Origin: Haplodiscus bocki | Lineage: Eukaryota | DNA length: 64,000 nt | Reading direction: 5' to 3' | Assembly (NCBI GenBank): GCA_965655095.1 | Contig: OZ296656.1 | Span: 70,990,001 to 71,054,000, forward strand | Part shown: piece after piece, positions 6,030 to 47,663 of the stretch | How positions within the stretch are numbered: the first letter of the stretch is position 1 | Layout of the letters: the number at the start of each line of letters is the position of its first letter | Notes under the pieces: model-generated | Databases searched by the model: none | What the model was told of the DNA's origin: nothing | The model's input: the letters and a program-made list of their open reading frames with translations, nothing else | Made by a program: the position numbers and the translations under genes

Positions 6030-7607
6030 GTTTCAGTCGTTTTGGCAATCAAAGAAACGTTGTGTGAAGGACATGTCACGAGGGGACGGGCCAAGAGCGT
6101 GTAGAACACGGAGCAGTTTCTGAAAAAGTCCTACGAAACAAAATTTGCCAGACTATTAGGGACTGCAACTTGATCCTTTGTTTTCAATACCCCTTAGTTC
6201 ACTTTTTTCGGTTTTCATTCAGTCACGCGTGTTACAGGAAAACGAAGGTGTGAGACGAGGAGGTCGTCCAGGAGCAGCACGATCATGCAGTAAAAATGCA
6301 GTTCCACGTCGACGCCATAGCACTGTTCACACAACACATCTGGGTCAATTAAGCAAAGATAATATTTCTGGAACGCGGATTGTGCGACAGTCACCTACAT
6401 CAGCAATGAGTGCCAACAACTGCACGCACTGTTCCGTTTTGCGGTTTCCCGATTAAACACCCTCAATATGTTGCAATCAAGGCAAAAATAGTAATTGACA
6501 TGTTGCCTGAACCACCTCCTTCCTTGAGGTACATATGGACTGCTCAAAACGACGAAGGCGTGCTGTTCCGTTCTTTCCGCCGTCAAATTAACAATGCTCC
6601 GGCAATGGCTTCCGTTAGGAAGAAAGAAAAACTTCCACCAGGCAATTCTTTCAACCCCACTGTGGTGATTCAGGGAAAAGCCTACTCTTTGATGGGACGT
6701 TTGCAAGCCGATGCTGGAGCATCTCCCAAATTTGCTCAATTGTACCTGCACGACGCTGATGAAACAATCATTCTTGGTTATCGATTGGCCAAAATTGGAA
6801 GCAACAATGTCTGTGCAGGAGTATCGCTGTTGAAATCGATTGTTCAAAAGATTCAGCGGAAAAATCCAATTTCGAAAAATTATCGTTATCATTTTTCCAT
6901 CAGTTTATTGTTCTATTGAGTTGCAGAATGAATTGAGGTTCCATAACCTGTATATTAGGGAGTTTATTCATATCTGCAGCCTCTACTGTACTGGAGAGGG
7001 CAATCTAAGTTTTTTTTATTGAGTCCCATTAACGGCCAATGGCAGAACACTGGCGGCGAAACAACTACACTTTAACGGAAGTCCATGTATTGAAAGACGC
7101 AACTGCACATCCAACTCAATTGGTTTTACAGGAAAAAGGAGGCGGAAATAAAGTCATTATTGAAGTCCACAAATCTAAGGATCCCCTGCATTTCGTTCTT
7201 TTCACTAATGTTGATGCCGACGGATGGCATTGTGATGTGAAGCAAAAGTTAGCGGTCTTTGTATAATTAACCCGTTTACATTTAGGAACCTATTACAGAT
7301 ATTTCACAGTTATTATTCCAAAATTCGAAAGTCACTAATCAACTTCAAAGTCAAAGTCTTTCTATATCTAAACTTCATACCAGTTTTTATCAGTTCCGCC
7401 ATTTCTTTTCCCCTGTTTTCCAGTTGTTCTTTCAACCAACGAAGTACTAATGGACGGCTGTGTTACTCAAACTCGAGCACACAGCAGCTAATTAGAGATC
7501 GAATTGAACAACTAACAACTGAAGCAACTCATTTTGATAGCTAAACTGGGGGCCAAAATGTAAAACCTGAAAAGAGTTTGCTCTCCTAGTTGTTCAGGTT
7601 TTCAAAT
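6030..7607 (+). repeat. Helitron tandem unit 2 (1578 bp; 622-bp internal deletion)
   Basis: Near-identical to unit 3 but joins CACTTTTTTCGG directly to TTTTCATTCAGTCAC at 6210-6211 (GG microhomology); unit 3 has 7790-8411 in between. Confidence 0.9.
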
Positions 7608-9823
7608 GTTTCAGTCGTTTTGGCTATCAAAGAAACATTTTGTGAAAGACATGTCACGAGGGGACGGGCCAAGAGCGTGTAGAACACGGAGCAATTTCTG
7701 AAAAACTCCTACGAAACAAAATTTGCAAGACTATTAGGGACTGCAACTTGATCGTTTGTTTTCAATACCCCTTAGTTCACTTTTTTCGGATCCAACAGTT
7801 TTCTTCACAAATCTGTGCTGAAAAAACTGTGCTTCAGCTTTTCTCGCTTTGTCACATAAATCAGAATTCCAATAATTTTCTAGTAGGTTGCAGAAAAAGT
7901 AGTTTACCAATTAAAATAGTTGTAGTTGTTCATTGTCTTAACGGACGTCAACTCCATGTAAAAAGATTTACAGTTGAGGCGTTTTGCTTCTACTTGCTCC
8001 AAAAAAAATTACATGTTTAAAGTCGAACTTTTTTCAGAGCCTAATGGGATATTGTGTTGAAATATAAATCCTCAGCAACGTCTTCCGTCAGTGAACGAAC
8101 GAAGACACATGCGACAACTACACTTTGAAAACCTGAAGTGGTAAGAATTGTCCATTTTGATATGCGAGATAATTATCTGAAAAATCAATAAACTTTTTTG
8201 CAAAATCCAACCAATTCATTTACAAGACAGTCTCCATATCCTTTATTTGGTTAAATTTTGCTCAAAAGAAGAAGAACGAATAAAAGAGCAAACAACAAGT
8301 GATTATTTTGACCTCTGCTTCAGAAATAGAGTCTGTACATTTTCCTTCACCGCAAAGTCAACAAACGGTGAGAACTGAACGATATGTTTACACTGAAAGC
8401 TTCCATCAAGGTTTTCATTCAGTCACACGTATTACAGGAAAACGAAAGGGTGAGACAAAGAGGTCGTCGAAGAGCAGCACGATCATGCAGTCAAAAAGCA
8501 GTTGCTCGTCGACGCCATCGCACTGTTCACACAACACATCTGGGTCAATTAAGCAAAGATATTTTTTCTGAAACGCGGATTGTGCGACAGTCACCTACAT
8601 CAGCAATGAGTGCCAACAACTGCACGCACTGTTCCGCTTTGCGGTTTCCCGATGAAACACCCTCAATATGTTGCAATCAAGGCAAAAATAGTAATTGACA
8701 TGTTGCCTGAACCACCTCCTTCCTTGAGGTACATATGGACTGCTCAAAACGACGAAGGCGTGCTGTTCCGTTCTTTCCGCCGTCAAATTAACAATGCTCC
8801 GGCAATGGCTTCCGTTAGGAAGAGAGAAAAACTTTCACCAGGCAACTCTTTCAACCCCACTGTGGTGATTCAGGGAAAAGCCTACTCTTTGACGGGACGT
8901 TTGCAAGCCGATGCTGGAGCATCTCCTAAATTTGCTCAATTGTACCTGCACGACGCTGCTGAAACAATCATTCTTGGTTATCGATTGGCCAAAATTGGAA
9001 GCAACAATGTCTGTGCAGGAGTATCGCTGTAGAAATCGATTGTTCAAAAGATTCAGCGGAAAAAATCCAATTTCGAAAATTTATCGTTATCATTTTTCCA
9101 TCAGTTTAATGTTCTATTGAGTTGCAGAAAGAATTGAGGTTCCATAACCTGTATATTAGGGAGTTCATTCATATCTGCAGCCTCTATTGTACTGGAGAGG
9201 GCAATCTAAGTTTTTTTATTGAGTCCCATTAACGGCCAATGGCAGAACACTGGCGGCGAAACAACTACACTTTAACGGAAGTTCATGTATTGAAAGACTC
9301 AACTGCACATCCAACTCAATTGGTTTTACAGGAAAAAGGAGGCGGAAATAAAGTCATTATTGAAGTCCACAGATCTACGGATCCCTTGCGTTTCTTTCCT
9401 TTCACTAATTTTGATGCCGACAGATGGCATTCTGATGTGAAGCAAAAGTTAGCGGTCTTTGTATAAATAACCCGTTTACATTTAGGAACCTATTAAAGAC
9501 ATTTGACAGTTATATTCCAAAAATCGAAAGCCACTAATCAACTTCAAAGTCAGAATTCAAAGAGTTAGGATTCTTTCTAAAATTAAAACTTCATACCAGT
9601 TCTCATCAGTTCTACCATTTCTTTTCCCCTGTTTTCCAGTTGCTCTTTCAACCAACGAAGTACTAATGGAGTGCTGTGTTACTTAAACTCGAGCACGCAG
9701 CTGCTAATTAGAGATCGAATTGAACAACTAACAACTGAAGCAACTCATTTTGATAGCTAAACTGGGGGCCAAAATGTAAAACCTGAAAAAAGTTTGCTCT
9801 CCTAGTTGTTCAGGTTTTCAAAT
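7608..9823 (+). repeat. Helitron tandem unit 3 (2216 bp)
   Basis: Near-identical to the 5' half of unit 4 and the 3' half of unit 2; ORFs at 7748/9964, 8384/10598 and 8610/10824 are paired. Confidence 0.9.
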
Positions 9824-12155
9824 GTTTCAGTCGTTTTGGCTATCAAAGAAACATTTTGTGAAAGACATGTCACGAGGGGACGGGCCAAGAGCGTGTAGAA
9901 CACGGAGCAATTTCTGAAAAACTCCTACGAAACAAAATTTGCAAGACTATTAGGGACTGCAACTTGATCGTTTGTTTTCAATACCCCTTAGTTCACTTTT
10001 TTCGGATCCAACAGTTTTCTTCACAAATCTGTGCTGAAAAAACTGTGCTTCAGCTTTTCTCGCTTTGTCACATAAATCAGAATTCCAATAATTTTCTAGT
10101 AGGTTGCAGAAAAAGTAGTTTACCAATTAAAATAGTTGTAGTTGTTCTTTGTCTTAACGGACGTCAACTCCATGTAAAAAGATTTACAGTTGAGGCGTTT
10201 TGCTTCTACTTGCTCCAAAAAATGTACATGTTTAAAGTCGAACTTTTTTCAGAGCTAATGGGAAATTGTGTTGAAATATAAATCCTCAGCAACGTCTTCC
10301 GTCAGTGAACGAACGAAGACACATGCGACAACTACACTTTGAAAACCTGAATTGGTAAGAATTGTTCATTTTGATATGCTAGATAATTCTCTGAAAAATC
10401 AATAATGTTTTTTGCAAAATCCAACCAATTCATTTACAAGACAGTCTCCATATCCTTTAATTGGTTAAATTTTGCTCAAATGAAGAAGAACGAATAAAAG
10501 AGCAAACAACAAGTGATTAATTTGACCTCTGCTTCAGAAATAGAGTCTGTACATTTTCCTTCACCGCAAAGTCAACAAACGGTGAGAACTGAACGATATG
10601 TTTACACTGAAAGCTTCCATCAAGGTTTTCATTCAGTCACACTTATTACAGGAAAACGAAAGGGTGAGACAAAGAGGTCGTCCAAGAGCAGCACGATCAT
10701 GCAGTCAAAAAGCAGTTGCTCGTCGACGCCATCGCACTGTTCACACAACACATCTGGGTCAATTAAGCAAAGATATTTTTTCTGAAACGCGGATTGTGCG
10801 ACAGTCACCTACATCAGCAATGAGTGCCAACAACTGCACGCACTGTTCCGCTTTGCGGTTTCCCGATGAAACACCCTCAATATGTTGCAATCAAGGCAAA
10901 AATAGTAATTGACATGTTGCCTGAACCACCTCCTTCCTTGAGGTACATATGGACTGCTCAAAACGACGAAGGCGTGCTGTTCCGTTCTTTCCGCCGTCAA
11001 ATTAACAATTCTCCGGCAATGGCTTCCGTTATGATTAGAGGAAAACTTCCACCAGGCAATTCTCACGCCATTGTGGTGATTCAGGGAAAAGCCTACTTTT
11101 TGATGGGGCCTTTGCAAGCTGATGCTGGAGCATCTGCTAAATTTGCTCAATTGTACCTGCACGACACTGATGAAACAAAACATTCTTGGTTATCGATTGG
11201 CCAAAATTATAAGCAACAATTTGTGTGTGCGGAAGTATTCGCTGTTGAGATCGACTGTTCAGAAGATTCAGGTGAGAATTACTCAATTTCGAGAATTTGT
11301 GGGTACCATTCGACGGTTCGCCTATTGTTCTTTTGTGTTCCAAGATGAACTGATGGTGATTAACCCGTACCGTACAATAGGGACTTCATTCAGATTTGCA
11401 ATATCTCCTCTGCCGAAGTAGACAATCTTCGGTCTTTCATCGATCCCCATAAACGGCCGTTGTTAGAACACTCGCGGCGGTACAAAAACAGTTTAACGGA
11501 AGTCACTGTATTGAGAGACTCAACCGCACAGCCAGCTGAATTAGTCTTACACAAAAAAAGAGGCTGATTACAAGTCATTACTGAGGTGCCCAGATCTAAA
11601 GATCCGCTGCATTTTGTTCTCCTTTCCTTTCGGAACCGACGGATGGAATTCTGATTTGAAGCAAAAGTTAGCGGAAGTTGTATACTGGATCTTTTTAAAT
11701 TTAGGAGTCTGTTCAAGACATTTCATCCTAATTATTCCAAAACCGTAATGCTTCCAATAATGGGATTTCAACCATGCAATTTGAAATTCTCCAAATGTTA
11801 CAATTGTTTCAGCTCCCACGCAACAAAACGATTGACTTGCAAGGAGTATTTTTCTTACATGTTGCAAAAGAGGCCCCACTCAACCAACGTCTTCCAATAC
11901 GGTCAGCGGTTGTTCCAAGAGTTTTTGTGTTTGGCCTGGTCTTCCATCAAAAGCCAGCGATTACAGTTCACTGCGAACCATCAAGCGGAGTTAAGATGTG
12001 AACTCTACAGTGAGCTTCTGGACGATATTCATGCAGACCCAGAAGAGAAACTTGTAGCTGAAACTATTCTACCAACAACCGTTGAAGGCTTCTATAGGGA
12101 TAGGATGAAACAAATAGCGGATACCACTGCACTTCACTACGTTCCAGAGAATTAG
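9824..12155 (+). pseudogene. Helitron unit 4: RepHel N-terminal region, with a 73-nt intron at 11272-11344
   Basis: Continues past the point where units 1-3 stop: CKEYFSYMLQKR..FQYGQRLFQEF..QAELRCELY..ILPTTVEG. CAG|GTGAG...CCAAG joins QKIQ to DELMVINPY. Confidence 0.8.
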
Positions 12156-14330: not shown

Positions 14331-17284
14331 TTTGTAGCTACAATTCAGTTTATTTTCTTGAAGCTTGCCTCATTTCAATTTTGCCGATAACCTTTAACGG
14401 ATAAACTTTTCTAAATATCAATCATTTACGTTTAGTCAACTTTCTAAGAGTTAATTCGTTGCACACTGTTATAATCCTGCATGAATCAGATTTGTGTCAA
14501 GTAAATCATGTTCAAGACTGTTTCTGATTTCAGGAGACTAGTATTGGAGAAAACGCAGTTCCTCAAAAAAACGGACTGCTGTCGTTGAGACGGGGAACCA
14601 CGATTTGACTGTGGTGTAGTGGTTAAAAATGTCATCAAAGTGAAACGTTCCATTTCCTGCTGGTGTTCAGATGACAATAGTTCCTTTGTTTTGTCGCCGA
14701 CAATAAATACAGAGTTAAAGGTGGCACATATTTACTGAAGATTGGATACACTGACTAGGTACACATATAACTTACACCATTCCTATAGCTCAATTTTGTT
14801 CCTATTTTCCAGGATCATAGAAAATCTGTACCGTCCGATCAAAAATGCCATTATGTTGCCACGGATTGCGGCTAACACATTCAAAACCGCCTCTCAGACA
14901 CACCTTTTTTTTACAATGAAACGATGTGTTTGCTTTAAGAGGGCAACGTCCAACAAGTTTTCTGGGACTGTTATGTGCTTTCCACTCCTACACCGCTAGC
15001 TCAAAGACATCATTGCTCCCGAGCTTGACCACCAATAGCGAAGCAAAATCGCACCAGAGTAGTGCAGCGGTTACGGACGATCACAGAAAGCGGCCAACAG
15101 TCTTCAAAATACAATTTTTTTTACAGACGCTAGTGAGAATTTCTGTTTTCTGTGACACAAAATTGAAATAGTCGTCAAATACGAAAGGAAGAGGCAACCC
15201 TTCCCAAGCCGTCCACACTATCGACACGGCTGAGGCTCATCGATTTTCCCAAAACACGATCTTTTCCATCAAAACTGAGAAAAAAACATCCCGGCAACTT
15301 CGCAGATTTTCCAAGGGAAAAGCGTTTGAATCACTTCCTAGCTAGAGCTCTGTCATGACACAGTCTCACCCGAGTGGTCAAGGGAAACACTTTTGACGGA
15401 AGCCTCAAGACAAAAATATTTTTCCACCAAGGCTCCAAATATTTGGCAGTAGAAAGAAAGGGGAACTAGTTACAACCTCATGGACATTATCGGGGCCTAA
15501 GAGTTGATTAAAGGCTGGATGGACGCAATCTGGACTTTAGTCTAATTGAAAAGCCTCAACGAGCACCGCGAGCGACAAAACGTCCAATTTTTTAAAAAAC
15601 AGAGCCAGATATTTTGCAGTCAAAAACAATTTAAGTTGAAACAGTAGTAAAGATAAATCCTGGGAGCATATTCAATCAGGTCAATCCTGCAACTCAGTGT
15701 AAATTCCAACTGGTTAATTACCGATTGCGCGGAACATTCGATTCGTTTCATAAAGGTTGACTGGGTATTAGAATTATCTCAGCGGTCCCGTTCCGAAAAC
15801 AACGTTACGCATAATCGATAAACTTTCCAGTATTCCGTGAACTGAAATTTCAGTTAATGTAGCGCACGGAGAAGAGTAATTAACGGAGACAATTATCAGC
15901 GAGAAGCACATGAACGCGATTCTGGCTTACTTCAAGCAAGTCATTCGTGAGAAAGAACACCGAACACTTTATGCGAAATATGCTCGGGTGGACAAGGCAA
16001 GCCGACAGTAATAGACTTGCTTCACTCCCAGCACTGGGCTGCGTTTCGAAAACTCGAAAGACCAAACTGATTTCCAGCAAAGTTATCCAATCGTATTGCG
16101 TATTAATAGTTGAACCAAAACTAACGAAAGCCAGAAAATTTTCAAAGATTCCAATTGCTTTTCATTCAAGGTAAGGGAGAACATACCGTCACTCGCTAGA
16201 AGCTAATTTTGGACTGATCCAGGTGCATCAATATGATGATAAGATACACGAGAAAACTTTACACGGAAAACACAACTTCCCACAAAAAAACATGCTAGAC
16301 GCAAGTAAAAACGTCTTCGATTTTTTTATAACATTTTAGGCGTTTTCAAGAAACTATGAATGAGGATATTCTGGGTACTACTGGGAGCCATAGGCATCAA
16401 ATAGTTGAATGAGCAATAAATCGACAACATCCGACCAATAGTCCTCAAGACAAACACATCTAATGACGGAAGTAAAAGCACAGTTGTTTTTCCATTTACA
16501 TGTTGAAAGCTTTCACTAAAGAAATAAAATTACAACTAGCTAATCCCTTTTTATCTTACCGTACCTGTAGATAACGAGAATTCAATTTAACGCTCGCTAT
16601 GTGGACTCGACGAAATCATGGAAGTTAATATTTGCCACTCCACAGGACCGCTAGGTGTCAAGAAAGTGAGTTCGCCCTGAATGGCCGCAACTTTCAAGCG
16701 AATTACTTTTCAAGAAAGGCAACTGGAAAACTCATCCATTAAAATATCAATGATTTTTCTATCATTTTTCAACTGCCTGCAGAACAGCTTCCATTAACGA
16801 TCGATAAAACTTCAGCGACTGCGCACCCAAAGTACCGCAATCAAAAAGGAGGAGACGAGACAACTTCACATATTCCGACGAAATCGAAAAAAAACTATTG
16901 AATGGAAATGTCAAAATTTCAGAAGATTTGAACAATTTAGCAGTCACAAGAAGCGTATGAAATCTTGACTACCGGAAAGAAAGCAGACAACGACGAAATG
17001 ATCAAATGAAAACAAAAGTCCCTCAGCCAGCAGCCACCAAATCGATTTGCCAATTGGCGTGAAGATGCGAAAAAAAAACATGTAAAGCCTTTAGCTTATC
17101 AGCTTAATGACAAAAACGAAAAGCGTCCATGATATCCTACGCTTCGCTCGCTCGTGTAATTACAAAACTGTTTAAGTTTGATTAGCTATCACTGCTTCAT
17201 TTTTTAGTTTAATTTTCAATTTGTTTTCAAGCGTATGTTTCGAACAGTTTTAAACTAATCAATCCGTGAATTACAGCTGAGTAC

Positions 17285-23799: not shown

Positions 23800-24038
23800 T
23801 CACTCATCCTCTTCTTCTTCGACTTCCTCTTCTTCTTCCACTTCCTCTTCCCCACTTTCGGAGTCCGACGATGATTTCGGAGATGCTTTTGAGTCCTCCA
23901 CTTCATTTCGTGTTTCTGTCTCTTCTTGGTTATTCTCTTCGCCAGATAAATTTTCTTCGTCTTCATCTTCGCTAATTTTCGCACGCTTTTTCTGTTTCTT
24001 CGCACCACCAGAAGAGCTTTTGACAGACTTGTAAGTAC
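23800..24038 (-). CDS. LEO1: LEO1 last coding exon (acidic tail)
   Basis: Acceptor GATTCAG at 24039, phase 1 matches the upstream exon; KKRAKISEDED...EEEEDE-TGA. Confidence 0.75.
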
Positions 24039-25560
24039 CTGAATCAAAACTGTTTATTTTGAAAGGACACTCACATTGATGCTTTGAATTTTTCGCTCTC
24101 AAAGGATTGCTTCACTCAATAATAAAAAATGAAAGACTAAATTGAAGCAGGAGTTGCTCAAGTTTATGGTTTTAAGTGAGTTATGAATCAACCACTGGTT
24201 TTAAGCAATCAACTGGAAAACAGAACATTTAAAGCAGTGAATTACTCGCCTTATAAATTTGCGCTTTTAAACGCCTGTGCATTTTGAATTTCGCTTTCCG
24301 CTCATACTGCTTGTTAGTACATCAATTTCTCTTATTGAGTTTGTGGCTGAAAAAAAGCAGACAGTTGATCCAGCTGAGCCATTCTATGATATTCAATGCA
24401 ACATGAGAAGCTAATTTTACCAAAGAAATTTTTAAATAGGTCAGTCATCGCAAGGAAGAATAATTTTTCCGACGTATTACCAGAAACAGCCGGCGGTAAA
24501 AAAAAAGTATTACCAGCCGTGGCTACAATCAGAATAAATACTATTCGGTAATACCACTTTAATCGGCCTCCTTTTGTCAGCGCTTATATTGCTTGCTGAT
24601 ATTTCCTTACCGCTTTTCGCTTAAATAAGCGCTCCCGCTGTAAGCGGTCCAATCACAGACAGATTCAAAGCAAAAATTTCTTCAAGATAACGGAAGAGTC
24701 CGAGTGCCGCGAAAAAAATTTGCGATGACTAGGTTAATTTAAACTCGCTATTTCAGCCAATTTCACAGTTCAGATAGGTATATGTCCTAACAACTTGTTT
24801 CCGTCATTGCAATTTTGACACATTAACGTATTGCAAAGAATGCATAATTTTCAGGTGTTCGTTAACGCTTTCTTTAACTATGAACGGCTCCCCTCCCCTT
24901 TTGGCGTTGCTGTGAAGAAATGAGGTGATACACCAGGGAGGAACCTTACAGCACTGAATTACGAAAAATAGTTGCAGTAGTATTCTTTTCCACTTTCTGT
25001 AAAGGGCTACCTGTATATTAATTCATGGATCAAAAAACCTGCCGGCGATTTTTACAGTTTTGAAGTTTCATTGTATTCTGGTTTGACTAGCAGCGACCTT
25101 ATACGCTTTAAATGCATTCGAATAATGAAAACTCTTTGGCTTGTAACATTGCTAATTTTTAGCGCTAATGACCACACCGCATGCTTTAAAAACGCTATTT
25201 GACTACTGTAATTTAGCATGTTGAAAATTGTCATCATGATAAGCTTGTTTTCAAATTTTTTTCACCTTGTTTCAACAAAGGTAAAATGCATGAAATTTTC
25301 CGAATATGCTACTAAATAGATTTGACATTTTTTTTTTCGAAAAACCAAAATGTACTCTAACACAAATTATTTGATTTGATGTCGTGATACGACCATGCTG
25401 CCGCCACAAAAGAATTTCTAAATTCAGAATCTGCACAGACTGGGCGCCGTAGCAAAGAGCAATTACTGACCGCTAAATTGAATCGCCAAAAAAATAATTA
25501 GCGTTGTTACAAGCCTGATTGTGAGACAGATACTGTCATGTTACAATCTAAAGGACTGAC

Positions 25561-25877
25561 CTGAAGCAGCATCACTTCCAGCCCCTTCCTGTTCTTCTTC
25601 TTCGTCGGAACTCAAAGTAGTCGGTTTGAACCTCTTTTTGGAAGCCGAACCCTCGCTTGATTTTACGGTGACCTCTTCATCCTTTTCTTCTTTTTCCTCG
25701 TCTTCTGACTTTTCTTCGTTGTACGACTCCTCCGAAGACGATTCCTCGTTCTCTTCGTCCGAATCCGAATAAATGTCACCCCCTGGACCTGACTTTTTAA
25801 ACTGGTTCTTGATGTTCCTCACACTGAACGAGTTGGGACCGTCTTCGTCATCAGAAAGAGCTGCGTCAAGATAGGAC
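25561..25877 (-). CDS. LEO1: LEO1 coding exon
   Basis: RSYLDAALSDDEDGPNSFSVRNIKNQFKK..IYSDSD; acceptor TTTTTTGTAG at 25878 (phase 2), donor TCAG|GTCAGT at 25560. Confidence 0.9.
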
Positions 25878-28800
25878 CTACAAAAAACATCAAACTGCTT
25901 TAACATTAAAGATAATAAGGAGTGGAAAACTTAAGTCAAAATGTACTGGTATCAGTTTCTGAATATTTTAAATAATGACTTTCGCGTAAACCATCATTAA
26001 TTGATTGTATTTTAAAAATCTAACGACATTCAGCAATCTCAGCTGACCTTTTGTAGCGTTTTTGATTTTTCTCCAGTAAAATATATAAATTAGGCTACAA
26101 GAAGCTCTCTGGTTTCCAGAAAGAAAACACATAATCTCAATGAGACTGAACTGCAGACCCCATCTGTGTCAGGAGAGATGGAAGGTTGGTATTTTCAGGT
26201 ATTTTTAAGAAATCAAAATTAACAGCAGATTAAACTTTAATTGAAATTCCATTTCAGAACTCGCAGAAAACCAAATAATTTCTGTACCAAAATTCGATAA
26301 TTTCATTCCACGACGTCAACTTTTGACGTTTAAAACATTTTATAGGCGCAGCTATTTATTTTTTCATCGCCGAAAAAAGTTTTGACCACCACTGCACGTA
26401 AAAAGTGTATTTCCTTTTCAGAACATTAAAGTTTCAGGACATTTCACCCCACGTACATTTCGAACCGAAGACATTTAACCCTAGAATAAAAAATTAGTTT
26501 GGCCCAAGCTTTATTCTTTATGAATCAGTAGCAGTTATGAAATTATTATGCCTATAAATTGAGAGTAATTAGCGCTCTCAATGAAAACATTAATACTTCC
26601 TCGTTAGTTGATGCATTGCAATAAAGTGGATCCAACTTACAAACTGGACACACTTCATTTTCATTGCTTCAAAACTCGAATGAAAACTAAGTTTGAAACC
26701 ACCTTGTGAAAAGGTCTCTGAGACACCATCACTAAAAAGTTGAACTCAGAGACAATACGATGAGTAGCGTTGAATTTGCGCATCTAGCAAATCAAAAACA
26801 ATTCTGGTTGTAGAAGGTTGCAAAACAAATGAGAAACAATGTTAACTACAGCCTGAAACTGCGCCCAATAACAGACAGCTGAAGAACCACTTCAATGACT
26901 GGCGAGCAGTTGAATTCGTTTCCAGGAAAACACAAGCAGGATGTGCAATTACGAAAAAATCGAGTTAGACAAGTCGCAAAAAAAAGATCGAAGAATTAGT
27001 GAAAATTCAATTCGCACAGTTTCATATGCTGAGAGTGCAGCAGTATTTTATCAGCTGTATACCGTTTACTTTCAGATTATGGAAAAGCACCAGCATGCGG
27101 CTATGTCTTCCAGCCGAACAAAACATTAACGTTTTCTAGATATTCCGTTGTCATCCTCTCGAATGCAGATTCCGATTTAAAAATTGATCCACTTTGACTC
27201 ACCTGCCATGAACGCCTCCGAAAAGGCACTACCCAGTGCTAGCACATCTGGACGCTTCTTCCACTTACTACAGAACTTCAGTAGGTGAACTAGGGCTGAG
27301 AAAGTTGTACCAGTCAAAGCCCGAGTTGTCGCTGGCTTTGAAACTTATAACAATTTTGGCCTTTGAAGAAACTTGAAAACTGAAATCCTTGATGAAACTG
27401 ATCGGAGAAATTTGAGAAGCATCCGAGCAGCTCTCCTTCACTTCCGGTGGGTTGAAAACACGTACGTTGAAAACTGAAAGTTGAAAATTTTTGTATTTCC
27501 GAAATACCAATACCTAAATTGAGAAAAACTTGAGGAGCCACTAATCCTCCATTAGTATAGAAAATCAGAGGATTCATTGCAAGGCGTTGGTAGTTCTACT
27601 ACCAACGCCATCGAAGGATGGCAATTTGGGATCTAAGCCTCATTCTCGGGCTCCGATCGAAGTCTGAGCAAAAATTGAGGAACAATACAGCAACTGAAAA
27701 TTATCTGTAATTGCAGTCAACAGCTGGTATGCAAATGTTAAGAAGTAACGAAAGATGCAGGTGAAAGTGAAAAACGCGATTGAACGTCATTGAGATAAAA
27801 ATACTATTCCCTTTCTTAGAGCAATGGCTTCTTTGTCAATGTTAAATCATTCCTCAGAAAAACATTAATTTTGAGTTTATCGTGCCGGAAAAATCATTTT
27901 TGCTGAAAACTACAAAGCTTTCCCAGCGAAAATCTATCACAAAAATCGGGAAGATATTAGGGTTTTTCGTCTTTCCCATAGCATAACCTTGATTTTCCCA
28001 GCCCAGGAAGCTAGAAATTTGGAAAAATCTCAATTCAGGAAGTAGGAGGACTTTAGGAAAATTCAAAGGCTAGACTAAAGTATGCCAGTTCGCCAGCAAG
28101 TGCTTGGCCACTTAGCTGGTCTTGTTACATAAGGTAGTGAAAAATACGTTCAACGAAAGAAGCGTGTGCAGGTATATTTCACTTCTACAAGCTGTTGCTC
28201 ATACTGCGTCACAATCAGTGATTGGCACATCAAAAATATTCAACGTAAAAATATTTGTGCTTGTTTACTTTTGTTCACAATGACAATGCTCATTTTGGAC
28301 GTACAAGTTGTATTCATTGCGTGCACTGAAATTTGAGTTAATGCTAGATTCTAGTTGACAGTTCATTACCGTTATGCGTGCAAATAGTGAGCGGCGGCTT
28401 TTGGGTCGAAATTGCTCGCTTGTTTACACTTCAATTACGCAATATTCGTTCTTTTTTCAAATTCCGTTTGATTCACTGAATTGGCTTTTCATAAAGTGTA
28501 GTGAAATGCCCATGCAGTGAAATTTCGTCGGGTTTAAAATGTCATGTAACCCCTAAAAATCCCATTAGCCTAAGAAAAATCAATGTTTCGATTGACATCT
28601 TGCATATATATTGTTTTTCAAGCGTTGAAAACATCTCATGACTGAAAACGATCAAAAATCAATTACCTGATTATATAAGTAAATACCTTATTACCTTAGA
28701 ATTATCAAGTAACTTCGCAACACATTCTGATTTGTCAGTTGAGATCACGGCTCCCAAAAGACATTGGAACCATAATCAGAGATGTGATCATTTCTCTGAT

Positions 28801-29223
28801 GTGATTGATGGAACCAAAGGTGAAATTTGGAACCATAATTTAAAAGTACTACAGCTGTCAATCAAAAGTTTGTTCGAAAAATGCCAAATTGAGATAATTG
28901 CCTGTCACAGTCGAAAAGTTGAAGTCAAGTTGAATGTCTTTTCAGGTTACTCCATCTTGCTAACCAGTGTTCAAAAAGTTTGCACAATAATCAACGCGAA
29001 AATGTACAAGTACCTGCCAAAGAGGCCGCTTTTGACCGTTCACACAAGATGACTGGACTCTCTGATGACGTCAAAAAACGCAAGTATTAGCCGGTTTCAA
29101 ATATTCCAATAACCATTCTTCTTTTCATTCAGTCAAAACATTCAAAAAGATAGTCACTGATTTTTTTTGGACAATTCAAGACGACTCATAGCAATATTTA
29201 CGTACTAATAGCAAGCAACTTAC

Positions 29224-29635
29224 CTATTGAGACCCCGTGACTGTATACGCTCTCTCTGTCGTCTTTGCACCGCATTCCTTCTAAGCGCAGCTTTCTCATT
29301 CTCCTCCTCCTTCTTCATCAACTCTTTCCTCAAATTTTCCGGATCCTTTCCAGCGATGGGCAGCACTTTGATCTGTTGTTTCTTCTGACTTCTCTCCGCT
29401 AACGAGAGAGTCATTTTACGATGTGTGAACGATTCGGTGGAATGAGGTCTGAATATGAGTTTGTTCTGAAAAACTGCCATGCCCTGAAGACCAGTACCTT
29501 GTCGAACGAACAGGTGATTGAAGTCTCCGCTCATTTTCATTCGGTGCGCATCAAAAATTTCTTTACCCAGATGCAATGTTAAGCTGCCATCAGACCAACG
29601 CACGAACCTGGCGTTGCTTTCTTTGACCACGTTAC
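29224..29635 (-). CDS. LEO1: LEO1 coding exon (Leo1 domain)
   Basis: [57 protein letters not shown]; canonical splice sites at 29636 and 29223. Confidence 0.97.
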
Positions 29636-30213
29636 CTGAAATCCATTCAAAAATCAAGATTGCAGATAATTTTAATTAATTTAAATAGCAGTAGAATGAA
29701 ATCCTATAGAAAATGGAGATGGTGAACCGTGTCTCGGATTTTCCAAACTATCAAAAATTTTCTGCCGTCATTGCCGATGGTACGAATCAAGCAAGTGAAA
29801 ATAGCGAGCCAATAAAAAGCGAGTAAAAAACACTGTGATTGTGTCTCGGCTATGGCGTCATGATGATCATGCCGAATGAAGAAAGCCAGTGAGTGCATCA
29901 AGTCGTCCTCCAAATTCACTCGCCTGCTTTATTCATCCAGTGTCATAACAGTGACTTCGAAGCCAAAAAACGTGAAGGGATCTTTAAAATGAATTGGACA
30001 GATTGAACATTTTCTGAATCATTCAAGTTGAAAGAGGCTCATAAAAATTTTTCAGACAAAAGCTAAGTAGGGGTATGAAGAACAACATTGACCTAAGCTC
30101 TAAGTGTTCTGATGCGTTCTTCCTGCATTAGTCTGGCACTATTATAAAGAAAGCGAAAGCGCCTATTGAAATTGAACTATAACATTAAACTTTTGTGTTG
30201 TTCATCAACTTAC

Positions 30214-31318
30214 CTTCTTCGTCGATTGGAACGTTCCTCCACCGAATGGTATTCTCGCATTTCAACTTCAGCCTCGATCGGCCTTCTTCGTCCAAAATGT
30301 CGTCTTCGTCAATTTCATCTTCATACAACATTGGGTCAAAAGGACGAGTTTCTACACTCAAAAAGTTTGGCAGTTTAACGAAAAAGTGCTCGTCTCCGAG
30401 GTCCGCGTTTACTTTGGGAATTTCAACTTCAATTCTCGTTTCTTCCTGGACTTCTTCCTCGGGTTCCTGCTGGATTTCATGTGTCTCATCTTGATTTTCT
30501 TCTTGAGTCCGACTTTTTGTTTCGGCATCCTCGTCTTCATCTGAGATCGCCACTTTCTTCTTCTTGTTGACAACGATATCGTCTTCATCTTCTTCTTCTT
30601 CGGCTTCACTGGACGAATCGAGATCTTCGCCAAACAAATCAGAAGCCGAAGGCTTCGCCCTTTTTTGCACCCCGGATCCTTCTTCGGCATTGCTTAAGTT
30701 ATCTTGATCTTGGTTGTCAGAAGCAATGCCATCTTCTTTGTTTTCTTCTTCTGAAGATTCGTCATTTTCATTCTGCTTTTCTGGAGATCCAGGCTCTTCG
30801 GTGTTTTCTTCCATAAGCATTTCAGTTCGACTTTCCGGGATTTTTTCGTTTTCATTTTCTTGTTCTCGCTCTTGTTCTTCTTCATCGCTTTTCTCATCAT
30901 CGTCATAATCGTTATCGTTTGCAGCATCAGGATTATCAATGCCATTGTCAGTGCTTGCCATGATATTATCATTTTCTTCTGAACGCTCTTCATTGTTATC
31001 GCCCGTGTTAGATTCTTCGTTATTGAACTGGTTACTATTGGAATTACTTTCCGGATCATTTTGAATATCTCTGGATTCTACCTGCTGTTGCATCTCATCA
31101 CCTTCGCTTCCACTCTCTTCTGATTCCGACCCACTGCTTGAATTATCAGTCCCATTTTCCGGCTCTCTTTCGGGTAAATCTTTACTGCTGATGTCCTCGG
31201 GTTGCCCAAAATGTCCGTCCTCAGTTTCCTCGTGATGTCCCCTGGTAGTTTCTTCGTTTTCCACGTTATCGCTGGAAACCCCACTTTCTTCACCGGATCC
31301 CTCTTCATCGTCTTCTTC
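30214..31318 (-). CDS. LEO1: LEO1 large exon (acidic region and start of Leo1 domain); 5' boundary uncertain
   Basis: [43 protein letters not shown]; donor GAAG|GTAAGT at 30213; the frame is open upstream to the transposon end. Confidence 0.92.
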
Positions 31319-33503
31319 CTGATCAGTGATGACAGTTTATATATGTCTTGTTATTTTCAAGGCAAGAAAAATATCTGGTCCTCCATTCAGGTTCTTGGAA
31401 AAGATCCCCCCGGCGGGTCTCGAATATCGAAGCACAAGAACCAAAAAGAGCACTTTGAGGCTACCAGTACCTAATGAAAAATATGGCAACCTAGGGAATG
31501 AGGAGGCTCGCTTTTGGTAGAAAGTAGATCCTATAAAAAGACTGAAGCTTGAAACATTTGAATTGCGTATTTGTAACAGTAACAAGTGCGTTCTTATCCT
31601 ATCTGATGCATTTGTAGTAAAAAAAATGACTTGGAAAAAAGCGAAAATTCAAGAGAGGCCGAAAATAGTTATATCGGCTTCTCAAATACGTTTTTTTCCA
31701 AAAAACGCTAAACTTTGAGAAAATTGACAAGAGTATATATTTGTATCGCCTTCTACGAAGTCAGAGCAAAAAAACTGATATGGAAGACGAAATCGCAGAA
31801 ATTCTCGGGGAAAAAACGGAAAGGTACCTATTTTGGTCAACTTTAGAGCACTCACAAAACCTCCACTTCGAGAACAATCAAGAAATCCTTTAAATTAGGC
31901 AAACATGTGTTTTATATTGATTTGACATGAACAAGAGCTAGAAAAATGGTCCAGATGTCAGAAGTGCAAAAATTCCTGATTAATTTTTGATAAAACCCGG
32001 CTTCTCGATAAAAATTCATAATAACCAAGAAATTTCTCACAATTCATCCTCCAGTACTGATCCATGGTAAATTTCAAGCCCAACGTTTATTTGGACACTT
32101 CCAAATTTCCGGAAAAAACACTGAATCTAGTGTTTCCTTCACTGATTTCAAGAGCACCAAAAGTACCATATCAGAGCAAATTCTCAAAATTCAAAAAAAC
32201 TTCAAAACCTCTTTTGTATCAAATTGTGCCGGATATGTAGTATAATTATTCCTGAAGGCAAAATAGCAAAAAAACCGAGGAAATGTTGGAGAAGAGCTTT
32301 TTTTGCTGGTTCGAAAACACCATAGGTTAACTTGATCAAATAAAACACCTGAATTTTCATCATAAACTGATTGAATTTTTTCTTCAGCAACGTTTTTTAT
32401 TGCATTGTAGCTAAAAAAAGCATATTTAACAAAACAGCGAAAAGTGAGCAAAAGTGAAAAAAATTCAGCTACTCCTTCTCAACCAAAAAATCGCAAACGT
32501 GAATGAAAAACATTATTTAAAAATCCGGCTGCAAAACTGTTAGACTTGTGCTTGCTTGTGCCTGCTAGACTTGTTTTTGACGAGTCACTAAAAACTTGAT
32601 ATAGAAACCAAAAGTGGACGAATTATGGAAATTAGCTACTTTTGATATAGTTCAACGCTACCCACTAAAAAGGTCATGGACAAATGACGCACAGAAGTGT
32701 CCGAGTGAGGTTATGTGCGATCTGAACAAAAGGTCAACATCATCCATATGATATCTTCCGCCTTCGATATTAAAACCAATAAAATTTTAAATTATTGCAT
32801 CGTAGTTTGCCCGATTTTGATTGGACGAGACCTAATGCTTGGGGAAAATTTACTGTAAAAGGCATAACGCTATACTTGCTCAGCAGACAAAAGTAATAGA
32901 GTATTGCCGGCTTTTACATCAATGTCGAACAGTCGTGCGAAAATTAGGATCTTCGCCAAATTAGGCCAGAAAAAAGATCTGGATTAGGCCAGAAAAGACT
33001 TTCAAAAAAAGGAGTCCTTCCTAATTTAAAACATACACATCAACGATGCTAACCATGAGAAGGTAAGAAATTAGCATAGCTAGCAGCCAAGAATTGCCCG
33101 AGTCTCCGCCGCCCCCAAGACTCAAAATACTCGTAGAGCCTCAATATTTTGGAAAGTTTCGGTCTTTTCAAGAAAACTCTGCTTTTCAGGAAAACAGTAC
33201 ATTAAAGAGAAGTACAGTAATACCCCGTGTTTCCATCATCCAAGCAGTAAGGTTCAGCGGATAATCGAAGGCATTGACTGACAAAGGAAACGAGCATAAT
33301 TATCTTATTTTCAAGAATTAAAAGTCAATAACCATTTTGTGGAAGTTGGCTTAGAGTCGAGTTCGGTGGACAGTTACCAGAGCCAGAAGATATAAATTGA
33401 CAAGTTGGCGAGTATTGAATTGTTCGAAAAAAATCAAAATTCAAAGAAGTATATCAATATTTTTTCTGGTATACGCAACTTTTTAGGTGCTTCTATAGAT
33501 TTT

Positions 33504-33907
33504 ACAAAGAAGCGAAGCCCTGCTTCGCAATACGTGCGCTAAAGGAGTAAATTAAACAAATCGAACAAGTATACCTAATTTTTGAACAGGCCACGGTGCT
33601 GCGAAAACTACTGATTGAACAATTGAGCAGAAATTTAATATGTTATTTTTCTTATATGCAAGTACGAACGGCTGTGGCATTAAAGAATTCGCTTTATATT
33701 TGAAACAAGGGCGCACGCTGGAAAACAGGCCACGCGAACAGTTTTTTCGCATTTGCGCGAGAGAACACGAACACACTTTTGCAGGCAAGTGAGAGCACAT
33801 GAACAAAATCTAGGAGTATTAGAATCTAGGAAAAAATGCGAGTACAGAACGGATCGGAGAAAAAGTCCTCAGAAGCCTGTGATATCACTTGCTTGCGCAA
33901 GTGTAAT
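33504..33907 (-). mobile_element. HINE-like element, copy B (same ends, different interior), nested in the hAT element
   Basis: Perfect hairpin GCGAAGC-CCT-GCTTCGC at 33512; end GTGATATCACTTGCTTGCGCAAGTGTAAT is shared with 23133-23163. Confidence 0.7.
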
Positions 33908-34007
33908 CATGTCTGGGGAAAAAGTTCTATATGCTGGAAATAGCATAATGAGACATGGTTGAAATTGGACCAGCTCCGTGTCAGTCTGCTACCAGAAGCA
34001 AAAAAAA

Positions 34008-34342
34008 TAGGCACTAAGGATGCTAGGCACTAAGCGCTAAGTATTTAGCATAGTAAAAAAATTGGAATTGAGCGAATTTAGCAAAAACTTAAAAATAATG
34101 TTCAATGAGCGGAAAATGAGATCCGAATTCTGACAATATTCAAATCAATTACTATATTCACTTGAAAGCCAAGAATAAATAGCGACGTTGGATCTACCTT
34201 GCATGCGCGAAAAGGTGAGTGAACGTAAAAAAGTAAAAAATTATTCGCTTCTTTTTATTGCTTAGCTGGTCAGTCACGGCTGATTGGCGAAGAGAAAGGA
34301 AGAAAATAAATTTTATAGGCCTTAAGCTAAGCTCAATGCCTA
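34008..34342. mobile_element. MITE (TAGGCA...TGCCTA), nested in the hAT element
   Basis: Inverted ends TAGGCACTAAG / CTCAATGCCTA; homologous to 17418-17800. Confidence 0.65.
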
Positions 34343-34586
34343 CCAAGACAAAAAGTTAGCACTTGGAGGTTTTCACACAATGGGGGTATCAGAAATTTTT
34401 TTGGGTGTCGCAAAAAATGTAAACATATGGATAATATTGAGGAAATATGTCGACTTGAATTTCAGCATACTGATAAACGCAAAAAAAACTGTAACATTGC
34501 AAAAAAATGGACATCGGTAACTTTACTGAAAATTTAAAAGCTTAACAACTAAAAAAATTCCGAAGTCTTCAGAAACTTCATCACTG

Positions 34587-34850
34587 TTCCTGATTATCTT
34601 CTCTTTCACTATCTGCAGCTCCTTGTGACGTCATCATTTGGGACAGCATCGGCGAGACTGCATTTCTGGGTCCGAAGTTCTGTTGGTGAGGTAACTGCTC
34701 CGTCTCATTCTCGGCGACTTCGTCTTCGCGTTCGCTTTCGCCACTCTCGTCTTCTTCATCACCGTCAGAAGAACTCGCAGGCGATTCCGGACTTTCGTTT
34801 TCATCCACCGTTCCACCATGATCGTCCAGCTCGTCATTTTGTAATGCCAT
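34587..34850 (-). CDS. LEO1: LEO1 first coding block (acidic N-terminus)
   Basis: ATG-initiated S/D/E-rich ORF. It joins in frame to the 30214-31318 block (REDNQE|EDDEEGSG) once the element and one TSD copy are removed. Confidence 0.75.
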
Positions 34851-34999
34851 TGACTCTTAGCTCCAACAAGAAAAAATGCCTTTTCCTTTTCCCCACAAAT
34901 TAAAGCACAGGAAAATCAGCTCAAAATCATTCTGAAAATAATTTGCACATTTTCTTAGAGAACTAAACAAATTACATTACTTTAGTTATTAGTTTCCGC

Positions 35000-46802: not shown

Positions 46803-47663
46803 TCAATGACTCAGCTGTGCACCTTTTATAAAGGGTAGTCCGGAGGGTACTGTCGCCTTGTACTTGATATAATCGTAACCAAAGAAGTTTATTAACGTAA
46901 ATTCTTCCTCTTCCACGCGGTCTACGAAGAACTCGAAAGCAGCATATGCAAAAAGTACCACACAAAAAGGGTTTCTGAGCATAATTTGACTTCCGACAGC
47001 AAACATGCTCCAACCTGTATAAGTGGGATGTCGAATAACTCCGTAAACACCAGTTGTGACTAGTTTGTGGTTCGCTCTTTTCTGAGATTGAATCAAATGA
47101 GTGAAGTTGGAGCCCGCTTGAATCATAGCGGTTTTGCGAAGCATATCACCAGCAACTGCTATACAAAGACCCACGCAAAACAAACTTTTCGTTGATTCTT
47201 TCATTGTCGGTATAATATAGAGTTCCACGAGATATTCAATGACACTGACGAAAAAAGCGGCAATGTATTGGTGACTCTGGTTGAGTAAAAAGGAACTGAG
47301 GCTTAATGAAAAGGGGTGAAAAACCGAAGTCAAGAGGAATTCCAAAAAGTGAAAGGAACACATTAATCCGATGTACACATACAAAGGTATCAGCGTTGGA
47401 TAGTTTTGAACTACTGAAGATTTGACAGCAAAACTCATCCAACAGCCTAAGAAAGCCGAAACAACAATGACGTCAACTCTGAATGACAATGAACGATAAT
47501 GGATTGATATGGTCGCCACAGATAGAGAACACAGGATGATCCAATCAAAAGCATCGACAAGGTGAGGGAGGTAGGAGCTGGAGAGCCCGATCGGATGATT
47601 CACACACCAGAACGAGATGAAACTGGACAGAAAAGTAAACAAGCATACGATGTAGCACTTCAT
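46803..47663 (-). CDS. ICMT: Protein-S-isoprenylcysteine O-methyltransferase, 286 aa, uninterrupted CDS
   Basis: Multi-pass hydrophobic ORF with FHFLEF, SFLLN.S, LRKTAM..AGSNFTH, HKLVTTGVY..RHPTYTGW, RVEEEE, VPSGLPFI. Confidence 0.97.
   Translation of the reverse strand: MKCYIVCLFTFLSSFISFWCVNHPIGLSSSYLPHLVDAFDWIILCSLSVATISIHYRSLSFRVDVIVVSAFLGCWMSFAVKSSVVQNYPTLIPLYVYIGLMCSFHFLEFLLTSVFHPFSLSLSSFLLNQSHQYIAAFFVSVIEYLVELYIIPTMKESTKSLFCVGLCIAVAGDMLRKTAMIQAGSNFTHLIQSQKRANHKLVTTGVYGVIRHPTYTGWSMFAVGSQIMLRNPFCVVLFAYAAFEFFVDRVEEEEFTLINFFGYDYIKYKATVPSGLPFIKGAQLSH

Follow-up and report, generated by a model that had tools for sequence, protein, structure and literature searches.

The 64-kb window of Haplodiscus bocki DNA described here (contig OZ296656.1; all LEO1 coordinates are those of the whole stretch, read on the minus strand) contains the LEO1 gene, which is single-copy in this genome and whose first coding exon was found to be interrupted by a transposon-like element. 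The upstream part of the reading frame is open from an ATG at 34850 (MALQ...SEREDNQE) and is homologous to the N-terminus of LEO1 in a related species. It constitutes coding exon 1 (34590-34850), which ends on CAG in the GA-AG gene model considered below. Read-through from this exon stops at a TGA (34583-34581) lying inside the terminal inverted repeat (TIR) of the element. The frame resumes at 31318, 3.27 kb further on, where coding exon 2 (30214-31318) is open from the second copy of a target-site duplication (TSD) for 1.1 kb, passing through an acidic region into the beginning of the Leo1 domain (Pfam, E=2e-12). Excision of the element together with one TSD copy gives an in-frame peptide, and the resulting five-exon model has 2,334 nt and 777 aa with one terminal stop.

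The insertion in LEO1

The octamer ATCAGGAA is present at 34594-34587 and again at 31323-31316, identical at 8/8 positions, forming an 8-bp TSD. The first copy (34587-34594) is wholly coding and contains a predicted CAG^GA donor (a caret marks the border between exon and intron) that would be cut between 34590 and 34589. The second copy (31316-31323) supplies ATCAG as the predicted acceptor (AG 31320-31319), followed by GAA as the first codon of exon 2, and both copies are the same in the second haplotype. The element between them is 3,263 bp long (34586-31324, minus strand), starting with CAGTGATGAAGTTT and ending with AAACTGTCATCACTG. Its TIR consists of a 9-bp perfect inverted repeat (CAGTGATGA / TCATCACTG, 9/9) which is followed by a 1-nt indel and 5 further matches, resulting in 14 bp. 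The 5' TIR (34573-34586) contains an out-of-frame GT (34584-34583) in addition to the in-frame TGA, and the 3' TIR (31324-31338) pairs with the 5' end of the element. An exhaustive scan of the window for 8-bp direct repeats around 9-bp TIRs up to 6 kb apart identified this structure as the sole one, with a chance expectation of 0.08 per window (mean of 60 Markov-shuffled windows). An earlier note, made from the sequence alone, had described LEO1 as split by a transposon bounded by a TSD and TIRs, with both flanks open, decayed repeats nested in the element, a TGA met on read-through and the frame restored by removal of the element plus one TSD copy. It was borne out in every one of these structural details.

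Three older repeats (no strand assigned) are nested inside the element. R1 (33995-34342) and R3 (31399-31984) have an identity of 71-78% to other genomic copies, with R3 ending 75 bp short of the 3' terminus of the element, while R2 (33499-33909) belongs to a high-copy family to which it is ~72-75% identical and has a DNA depth in the thousands. The termini of the element (244 bp and 75 bp) and its 1.5-kb centre are unique in the assembly, in which only the nested repeats recur.

The hallmarks of hAT transposons are an 8-bp TSD, short TIRs starting with (C/T)AG and the target consensus nTnnnnAn. With T at position 2 and A at position 7, ATCAGGAA agrees with this consensus. The genome was found to contain at least 150 matches to PF05699 (hAT dimerisation domain), many of them in open frames of 624 aa. 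The assignment to hAT is based on the 8-bp TSD, the CAG-starting TIR and these many hAT transposase genes, a combination which fits the hAT-type ends proposed in the earlier note. About 25 hAT transposase-domain matches score identically within the 624-aa frames, which suggests a recently active hAT family. Inside the element itself, no transposase remnant was detected (none of its 10 ORFs (open reading frames) has a Pfam domain), nor was there a match to an Rfam family. In a search of the genome the 14-mer of the TIR gave 44 matches compared with 11 for the control (4-fold), and a 12-mer of TSD and TIR gave 117 compared with 75. On these sequence features the element is probably an old, orphan, non-autonomous transposon of hAT type, which has the characters of the superfamily and lacks the further copies that would place it in a family.

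The ORF of exon 1 has a cluster mate of 90 aa, and the contig carrying the latter (L077) represents the second haplotype of this species. This contig is colinear with 35956-24607 at 95.65% identity and has the element, both TSDs and both TIR cores intact. Furthermore, DNA contigs of two samples (S1 and S2) span the ends of the element, at 31277-31550 and, in two allelic forms, at 34271-34645. The earlier note had left it open whether the transposon in LEO1 has become an intron or marks a recent disruptive allele. The second of these possibilities, namely an insertion that is recent, rare or heterozygous (or an artefact of the assembly) with only the empty allele expressed, is rejected as highly improbable. 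An empty allele would read ...GATAATCAGGAA joined straight to GAAGAC in DNA, and the finding of no other copy of the element would suit such a reading. However, the element is present in both haplotypes, is 4-9% diverged between them and occurs in the contigs of both samples. Its nested repeats are only ~71-78% identical to their families, and the RNA-like contig next to the insertion site (see below) bears the alleles of both haplotypes. The first possibility is supported by this presence in both haplotypes and by the empty site, the depletion in RNA and the selection described below.

Through a fragment with 88% identity to the Leo1 domain, two haplotigs (L078 and L079) from a related species were identified, in which the gene order ICMT-LEO1-RBM8A is as in the window and the exons are ~80% identical. 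In this relative one open exon, ...SERSAEQDEEEGSGEPS... (RQMMSPRMVSERSAEQDEEEGSGEPSEGESSDN in a longer reading), runs across the insertion site, the corresponding stretch in the window being ...SQMMTSQGAADSEREDNQE before the break and the exon 2 peptide after it. The comparison with LEO1 of related species called for in the earlier note thus yielded an uninterrupted exon. The sequence at the relative's site is diverged (GAGCAAGACGAGGAA), and the single-copy target is visible at the protein level, not letter by letter. On this alignment the relative's exon is the empty site, and the element was inserted in the lineage of this acoel after its split from the sequenced relative. Just before the insertion site, the residues SER...Q can be aligned with those of the relative although the Ser and Arg codons are not the same, which weakly suggests that they are still translated.

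The two haplotypes differ by 1.5% in exon 1, 2.4% in exon 2 and 0.24% in exon 3, compared with 4–9% in the element, 7% in intron 2 and 7.3% in the flank upstream of exon 1. Exon 1 has 4 mismatches in 264 nt, compared with ~16 expected at intron rates, as well as an in-frame indel. Of the 27 substitutions in exon 2, 25 affect the third position of a codon, and its indels all have lengths divisible by three. By this pattern both flanking exons are under purifying selection, while the element drifts in the manner of an intron. It follows that each of the two exons is translated in its own frame and that splicing has to connect them in phase.

Removal of the element from RNA

One sequencing run (X5), from a study which provided several, is not on record as RNA and is regarded as RNA-like on the basis of a splice joint. 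This joint skips 578 nt with GT..AG ends (intron 2, 29636-30213), and no DNA run has such a joint; in addition, one X5 contig passes from exon 3 into exon 4. The depth of X5 is 160-290 over the exons of LEO1 and 2-10 over the element (outside its high-copy repeats), that is, the element is depleted roughly 30-100-fold. Exon 1 is covered at 34616-34927 and beyond at a depth of ~160-260, exons 1 and 2 being similar in depth. Contigs cover exon 2 at 30210-31306, one of them extending unbroken over 30675-31306 at a depth of 219. The contig end at 31306 is common to DNA and RNA runs and is due to a GAT/GAA polymorphism at 31307.

The coverage bears on two routes put forward in the earlier note. The GT within the TIR was said there to be out of frame with the AG of the TSD and in frame with a TTTCCAG at 31272, and both statements were confirmed. 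Splicing from the TIR GT (34584) to 31272 is in frame and would give 763 aa, but the X5 contig of 30675-31306 crosses 31272 unbroken. As the main rescue of LEO1 this route is contradicted; it could at most provide a minor isoform, and its use is very improbable. The alternative of an exonised piece at 34525-34471 found no counterpart either, none being visible in the depth of X5.

The LEO1 transcript extends upstream to at least 35009. At this point the RNA-like contig continues for 14 letters unmatched to the genome (TTTTCTTCCATGTC, RNA strand), which may be an upstream exon of the 5' untranslated region or a spliced leader; they differ from the published leader of Symsagittifera. In protein collections, queries with exon 2 and exon 1 matched LEO1 orthologues and genomic ORFs. 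No transcript-derived protein across the junction of exons 1 and 2 was found in these collections, where such blanks mean little as the acidic exon 2 query missed even its own ORF.

The route of splicing

With the insertion established, along with its occurrence on both haplotypes, an empty site, its removal from RNA and selection on both exons, the routes by which exon 1 could be joined to exon 2 were enumerated. A cut after the CAG of TSD copy 1 restores the ancestral frame, and hence the most likely donor is CAG^GAACAG. With ATCAG^GAA as acceptor, the predicted intron (o1, 31319-34589, minus strand) would have GA-AG ends and a length of 3,271 nt, which equals the element plus one TSD. This precise route is in frame and gives 777 aa with a single stop, and its spliced product is predicted to read ...GATAATCAG joined to GAAGAAGAC (GATAATCAG joined to GAAGAAGACGA, with AGTGAAAGAGAAGATAATCAG brought directly to GAAGAAGAC). 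In agreement with the earlier note, the enumeration makes a CAG^GA donor a requirement of precise removal. Both the precise GA-AG border and a contribution from a stem formed by the TIRs are predictions of this analysis.

The local splice consensus was taken from 15 other introns delimited in LEO1, RBM8A and ICMT of both species. The exon ends in AG at 13/15 of the donors; the acceptors have YAG^ in 14/14 read, with G as the next letter in 13/14. The pair CAG^GAACAG and ATCAG^GAA matches this consensus everywhere but at +2. At 34620 and 34617 there are GC donors whose phase suits the CAG acceptor and which are a poor match to the consensus of GC donors.

One canonical in-frame pair, overlooked in the earlier note, consists of the donor ATA^GTGAAA (ATA^GTGAAAGA, exon end 34610) and the acceptor AG at 31316-15 or 31313-12. 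A hAT-derived intron spliced at these weak sites would yield an in-frame protein 8-9 residues shorter (...GAAD joined to KDDEEG...), with the junction GCAGATA^AAGACGA or GCAGATA^ACGATGA. It is the sole in-frame GT-AG pair which fits the RNA cover of at least 34616 on one side and at most 31306 on the other, and the colinear pieces of 36-38 nt that it predicts would explain the lack of cover on 34587-34615. On the other hand, the pair (ATA^GT...GGAAG^A) breaks the local consensus at both ends: the donor has no exon-end AG, and the acceptor is AAG^ without a pyrimidine tract, 4 nt past a consensus CAG^G. Moreover, the residues which would be deleted (SEREDNQ) still align with the relative. This route is accordingly considered unlikely, while retaining some weight.

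The nearest GT and the best acceptor would instead be combined by splicing from the TIR GT (CA^GTGATG, 34584) to the CAG of the TSD (31319), with a predicted junction ...CAGGAACA^GAAGAAG. This shifts the frame, leading to a stop at residue 169, and the main transcript would then carry exon 1 as an upstream ORF or decoy, with LEO1 made from an internal ATG or a minor isoform. The first in-frame Met of exon 2 does lie upstream of the Leo1 domain. However, the stop falls far upstream of three more introns, a position for which nonsense-mediated decay is expected, and exon 1 is under purifying selection, is homologous to the relative's N-terminus and has an RNA depth like that of exon 2. Such a frameshifted main transcript is thus improbable.

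Removal could also take place at other non-canonical borders or be guided by a TIR stem, as in the non-conventional introns of euglenids or the introns of Fritillaria derived from MITEs (miniature inverted-repeat transposable elements). The ends of the LEO1 element pair at -20.2 kcal/mol, compared with -10.4 +/- 3.0 for shuffled sequences (3/500 shuffles reach this value), and those of the ICMT element described below at -22.5 kcal/mol (5/500), while the lineage-specific GT-AG introns o2 and o4 have no such end pairing. A TG-AG route after the CAG of the TIR is in frame and would add 2 residues. Nevertheless, pairing of TIRs is expected of any DNA transposon, homology sets the ICMT border at CAG^GG, where +1 is G, and spliceosomal introns almost invariably have G at that position, which counts against TG-AG. 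A route of this kind has only a small probability.

GA-AG would therefore be the only route to join both selected frames between a donor that has AG at the exon end, G at +1 and A at +3 and an acceptor of the form YAG^G, and precise removal of the LEO1 element as a GA-AG intron is judged to be more probable than not. A number of observations weigh against it. The canonical in-frame pair (34610 to 31314 or 31311) does exist. The junction of exons 1 and 2 is not among the 15 of 116 joints listed, and depth arithmetic places no X5 contig on 31307-31338 or ~34534-34615. Use of the GA-AG route predicts a colinear contig of 56 nt at 34590-34645, and none was placed; the missing bridging contigs are marginally easier to reconcile with routes for which the predicted colinear pieces are shorter. 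Every model, however, needs a contig past 31306, so that short bridging contigs go unplaced and their absence cannot decide between the routes. No second full-length copy of the element was found in the 1.5-Gb assembly on searching with the full element and both ends. The genomic matches of the TIR 14-mer sit within other repeats, with no partner TIR or TSD, and give no support at the level of a family. No report of GA donors, introners or non-canonical splicing in acoels was found in the searchable literature, and the GG-AG borders of the relative's ICMT are likewise predicted, by homology and not from RNA.

The following course of events is proposed. A non-autonomous transposon of hAT type entered the first coding exon of the sole LEO1 gene after the split from the relative, duplicating the 8-bp target ATCAGGAA, and the element is now present in both haplotypes. 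It is transcribed with LEO1 and taken out of the mRNA as an ordinary intron. Each TSD copy holds CAG^GAA, and the joining of the CAG of copy 1 to that of copy 2 would remove the element with one TSD and bring back the ancestral frame. For this the spliceosome would require that the exon end in AG and that +1 be G and +3 be A, while tolerating a letter other than T at +2. Pairing of the 14-bp TIRs would bring the two splice sites together and may be of help.

ICMT, intron turnover and known systems

ICMT is present in the window as one open frame (46803-47663). In the relative the gene is split after ...AVGSQLML by a small hAT-like element with the TIR CAGKGATGTTGMAAT, carried by both haplotigs. 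The ends of this element (CAGGGATGTTGCAAT / ATTTCAACATCACTG) match as an inverted repeat at 13/15 positions, the first 8 nt being those of the LEO1 TIR, and its flanks (CTTATGCT / ACTATGTT) are identical at 5/8. The downstream exon is 80% identical to that of the window, and its frame can be reached only if ...ATGCTCAG is joined to CAATCC. The frame of the exon therefore places the predicted intron at L078:3493-3823 (the same in L079), with 331 nt and the borders CAG^GGATGT...TTCAG^C (GG-AG); the relative's ICMT has no donor, GT or GC, in the required phase. It would represent a second, independent case, with GG-AG ends deduced from homology. The ICMT element has no match in the H. bocki genome and shares with the LEO1 element only the first 8 nt of the TIR.

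A comparison of 23800-34850 with L078:6300-15600 gave 4 LEO1 introns for the window and 9 for the relative, with one position (after ...GLNR) shared out of 12. The three introns specific to this species (o1, o2, and o4) all have direct repeats at their borders, namely the 8 bp of o1, AGGTAA in o2 and (C/A)TTCAGGT in o4. The last of these, a GT-AG intron at 24039-25560 (minus strand), has an empty site in the relative (GCTTCGGTTGCG). With AG^GT in its duplication, o4 is a canonical intron, whereas the duplication of o1 contains AG^GA. Intron o4 has the appearance of a canonical GT-AG intron generated from an 8-bp TSD; no clear TIR was seen in it.

Intron 2 of LEO1 (29636-30213, minus strand; 578 nt, GT..AG) contains a repeat of ~313 bp at 29700-30012, which has more than 2,000 candidate copies at 82-85% identity, a DNA depth ~1,000x that of single-copy sequence, and ends short of both splice sites. 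The possibility that intron 2 is wholly a transposon was rejected, as the high-copy repeat spans 29700-30012 only. In the relative, the LEO1 introns are GT-AG in 9/9 cases, with GGT or AGGT at both sides in 7 of the 8 borders compared (the exception being r4, CAG^AT). The relative's RBM8A/Y14 has a lineage-specific GC-AG intron (AAG^GCAAGT...TTGCAG^G) at L078 ~16277-17249, the gene being continuous in the window at ~18040. Of the EMC1 introns, the last one read is of the usual GT-AG type and has an inverted repeat in subterminal position only. Elsewhere in the window an ORF, MPTTARTVP...FAQLYLHD, is present in three tandem copies on the plus strand (6410-6919, 8610-9032 and 10824-11348), presumably resembling the N-terminal domain of Helitron-type proteins.

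Introns with GA and GG donors are reported for the tunicate Oikopleura dioica and are of the same kind as those of the copepod Eurytemora affinis. In the copepod, GA and GG donors account for ~12% of introns; AG at the exon end is obligate for them, A is nearly always present at +3, and they are found among many newly gained introns (Robertson 2017, PMC5714493). The predicted CAG^GAA of LEO1 and CAG^GGA of the relative's ICMT likewise have AG at the end of the exon, G at +1 and A at +3, and are paired with a normal AG acceptor. The introns would be needed for the full-length proteins, not for alternative forms, and they lie in a lineage with many idiosyncratic recent introns (in LEO1, 1/12 positions common to the two acoels). 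The host here is an acoel and the junction is predicted, not read from RNA; on the other hand, the origin of the intron is visible here from the TSD, TIR and empty site, whereas the copepod paper gives none.

Introner elements are DNA transposons in coding sequence which are spliced out at sites provided by the TSD and element ends (Micromonas, Aureococcus, dinoflagellates; PMC11282704). The LEO1 transposon resembles them in its position in coding sequence, its absence from mature RNA and the predicted use of sites supplied by the TSD. Introners, however, form families of many similar introns, whereas the LEO1 element has no detectable second copy. Its TSD also has no GT, so the device of AG^GT on both sides fails, although it is displayed by o4 of the same gene.

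Insertions of the maize hAT elements Ac/Ds are reported to be spliced from exons (Wessler and colleagues), mostly imprecisely, at GT-AG sites and in mutant alleles. The LEO1 TIR, CAGTGATGAAG, is close to the terminus of Ac, CAGGGATGAAA. Both systems have an 8-bp TSD, a TIR and removal of an exonic element at sites in or near its termini; the LEO1 insertion differs in being old, present in both haplotypes and located in a gene under selection. MITE-derived non-canonical introns of tunicates are also said to have been treated by Henriet in 2019.

Such MITE-derived introns in Fritillaria borealis and other tunicates (PMC13326754), and the non-canonical introners of Amoebophrya (PMC7789003), are similar to the present case in being transposon-like introns with inverted ends and direct repeats outside the GT-AG rule. 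Their borders, however, are mostly non-GT and non-AG and their spliceosome is remodelled, unlike the situation here, where the introns read are GT-AG except for one GC-AG intron and the predicted GG-AG intron in the relative's ICMT, and where the LEO1 acceptor is a normal CAG.

The locus would thus join two known kinds of event, the making of introns by transposons and the use of GA or GG donors. It brings together three questions: the source of new introns, their explosive gain in a few animal lineages and the tolerance of GA and GG donors. It offers a filled and an empty site in related species, a transposon signature and removal from RNA in a case where the GT-AG rules are satisfied only through two poor sites. 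It is put forward here tentatively, as a proposal open to real doubt, that the spliceosome of the acoel lineage accepts AG^G(A/G)A donors, so that a TSD target would need to contain only AGG, not AGGT, for the insertion to be cut out precisely. If this is true, hAT insertions into coding exons would be survivable and could fuel the very fast turnover of introns seen here, and LEO1 (GA-AG) and the relative's ICMT (GG-AG) would be the first introns with GA or GG donors whose origin can be followed back to one particular transposon insertion for which the empty site is known. In acoel genomes, such genes will come out truncated or split from gene predictors that accept only GT or GC donors. Confirmation of the GA-AG junction would tie relaxed recognition of the +2 position directly to transposon-driven intron gain in an animal.

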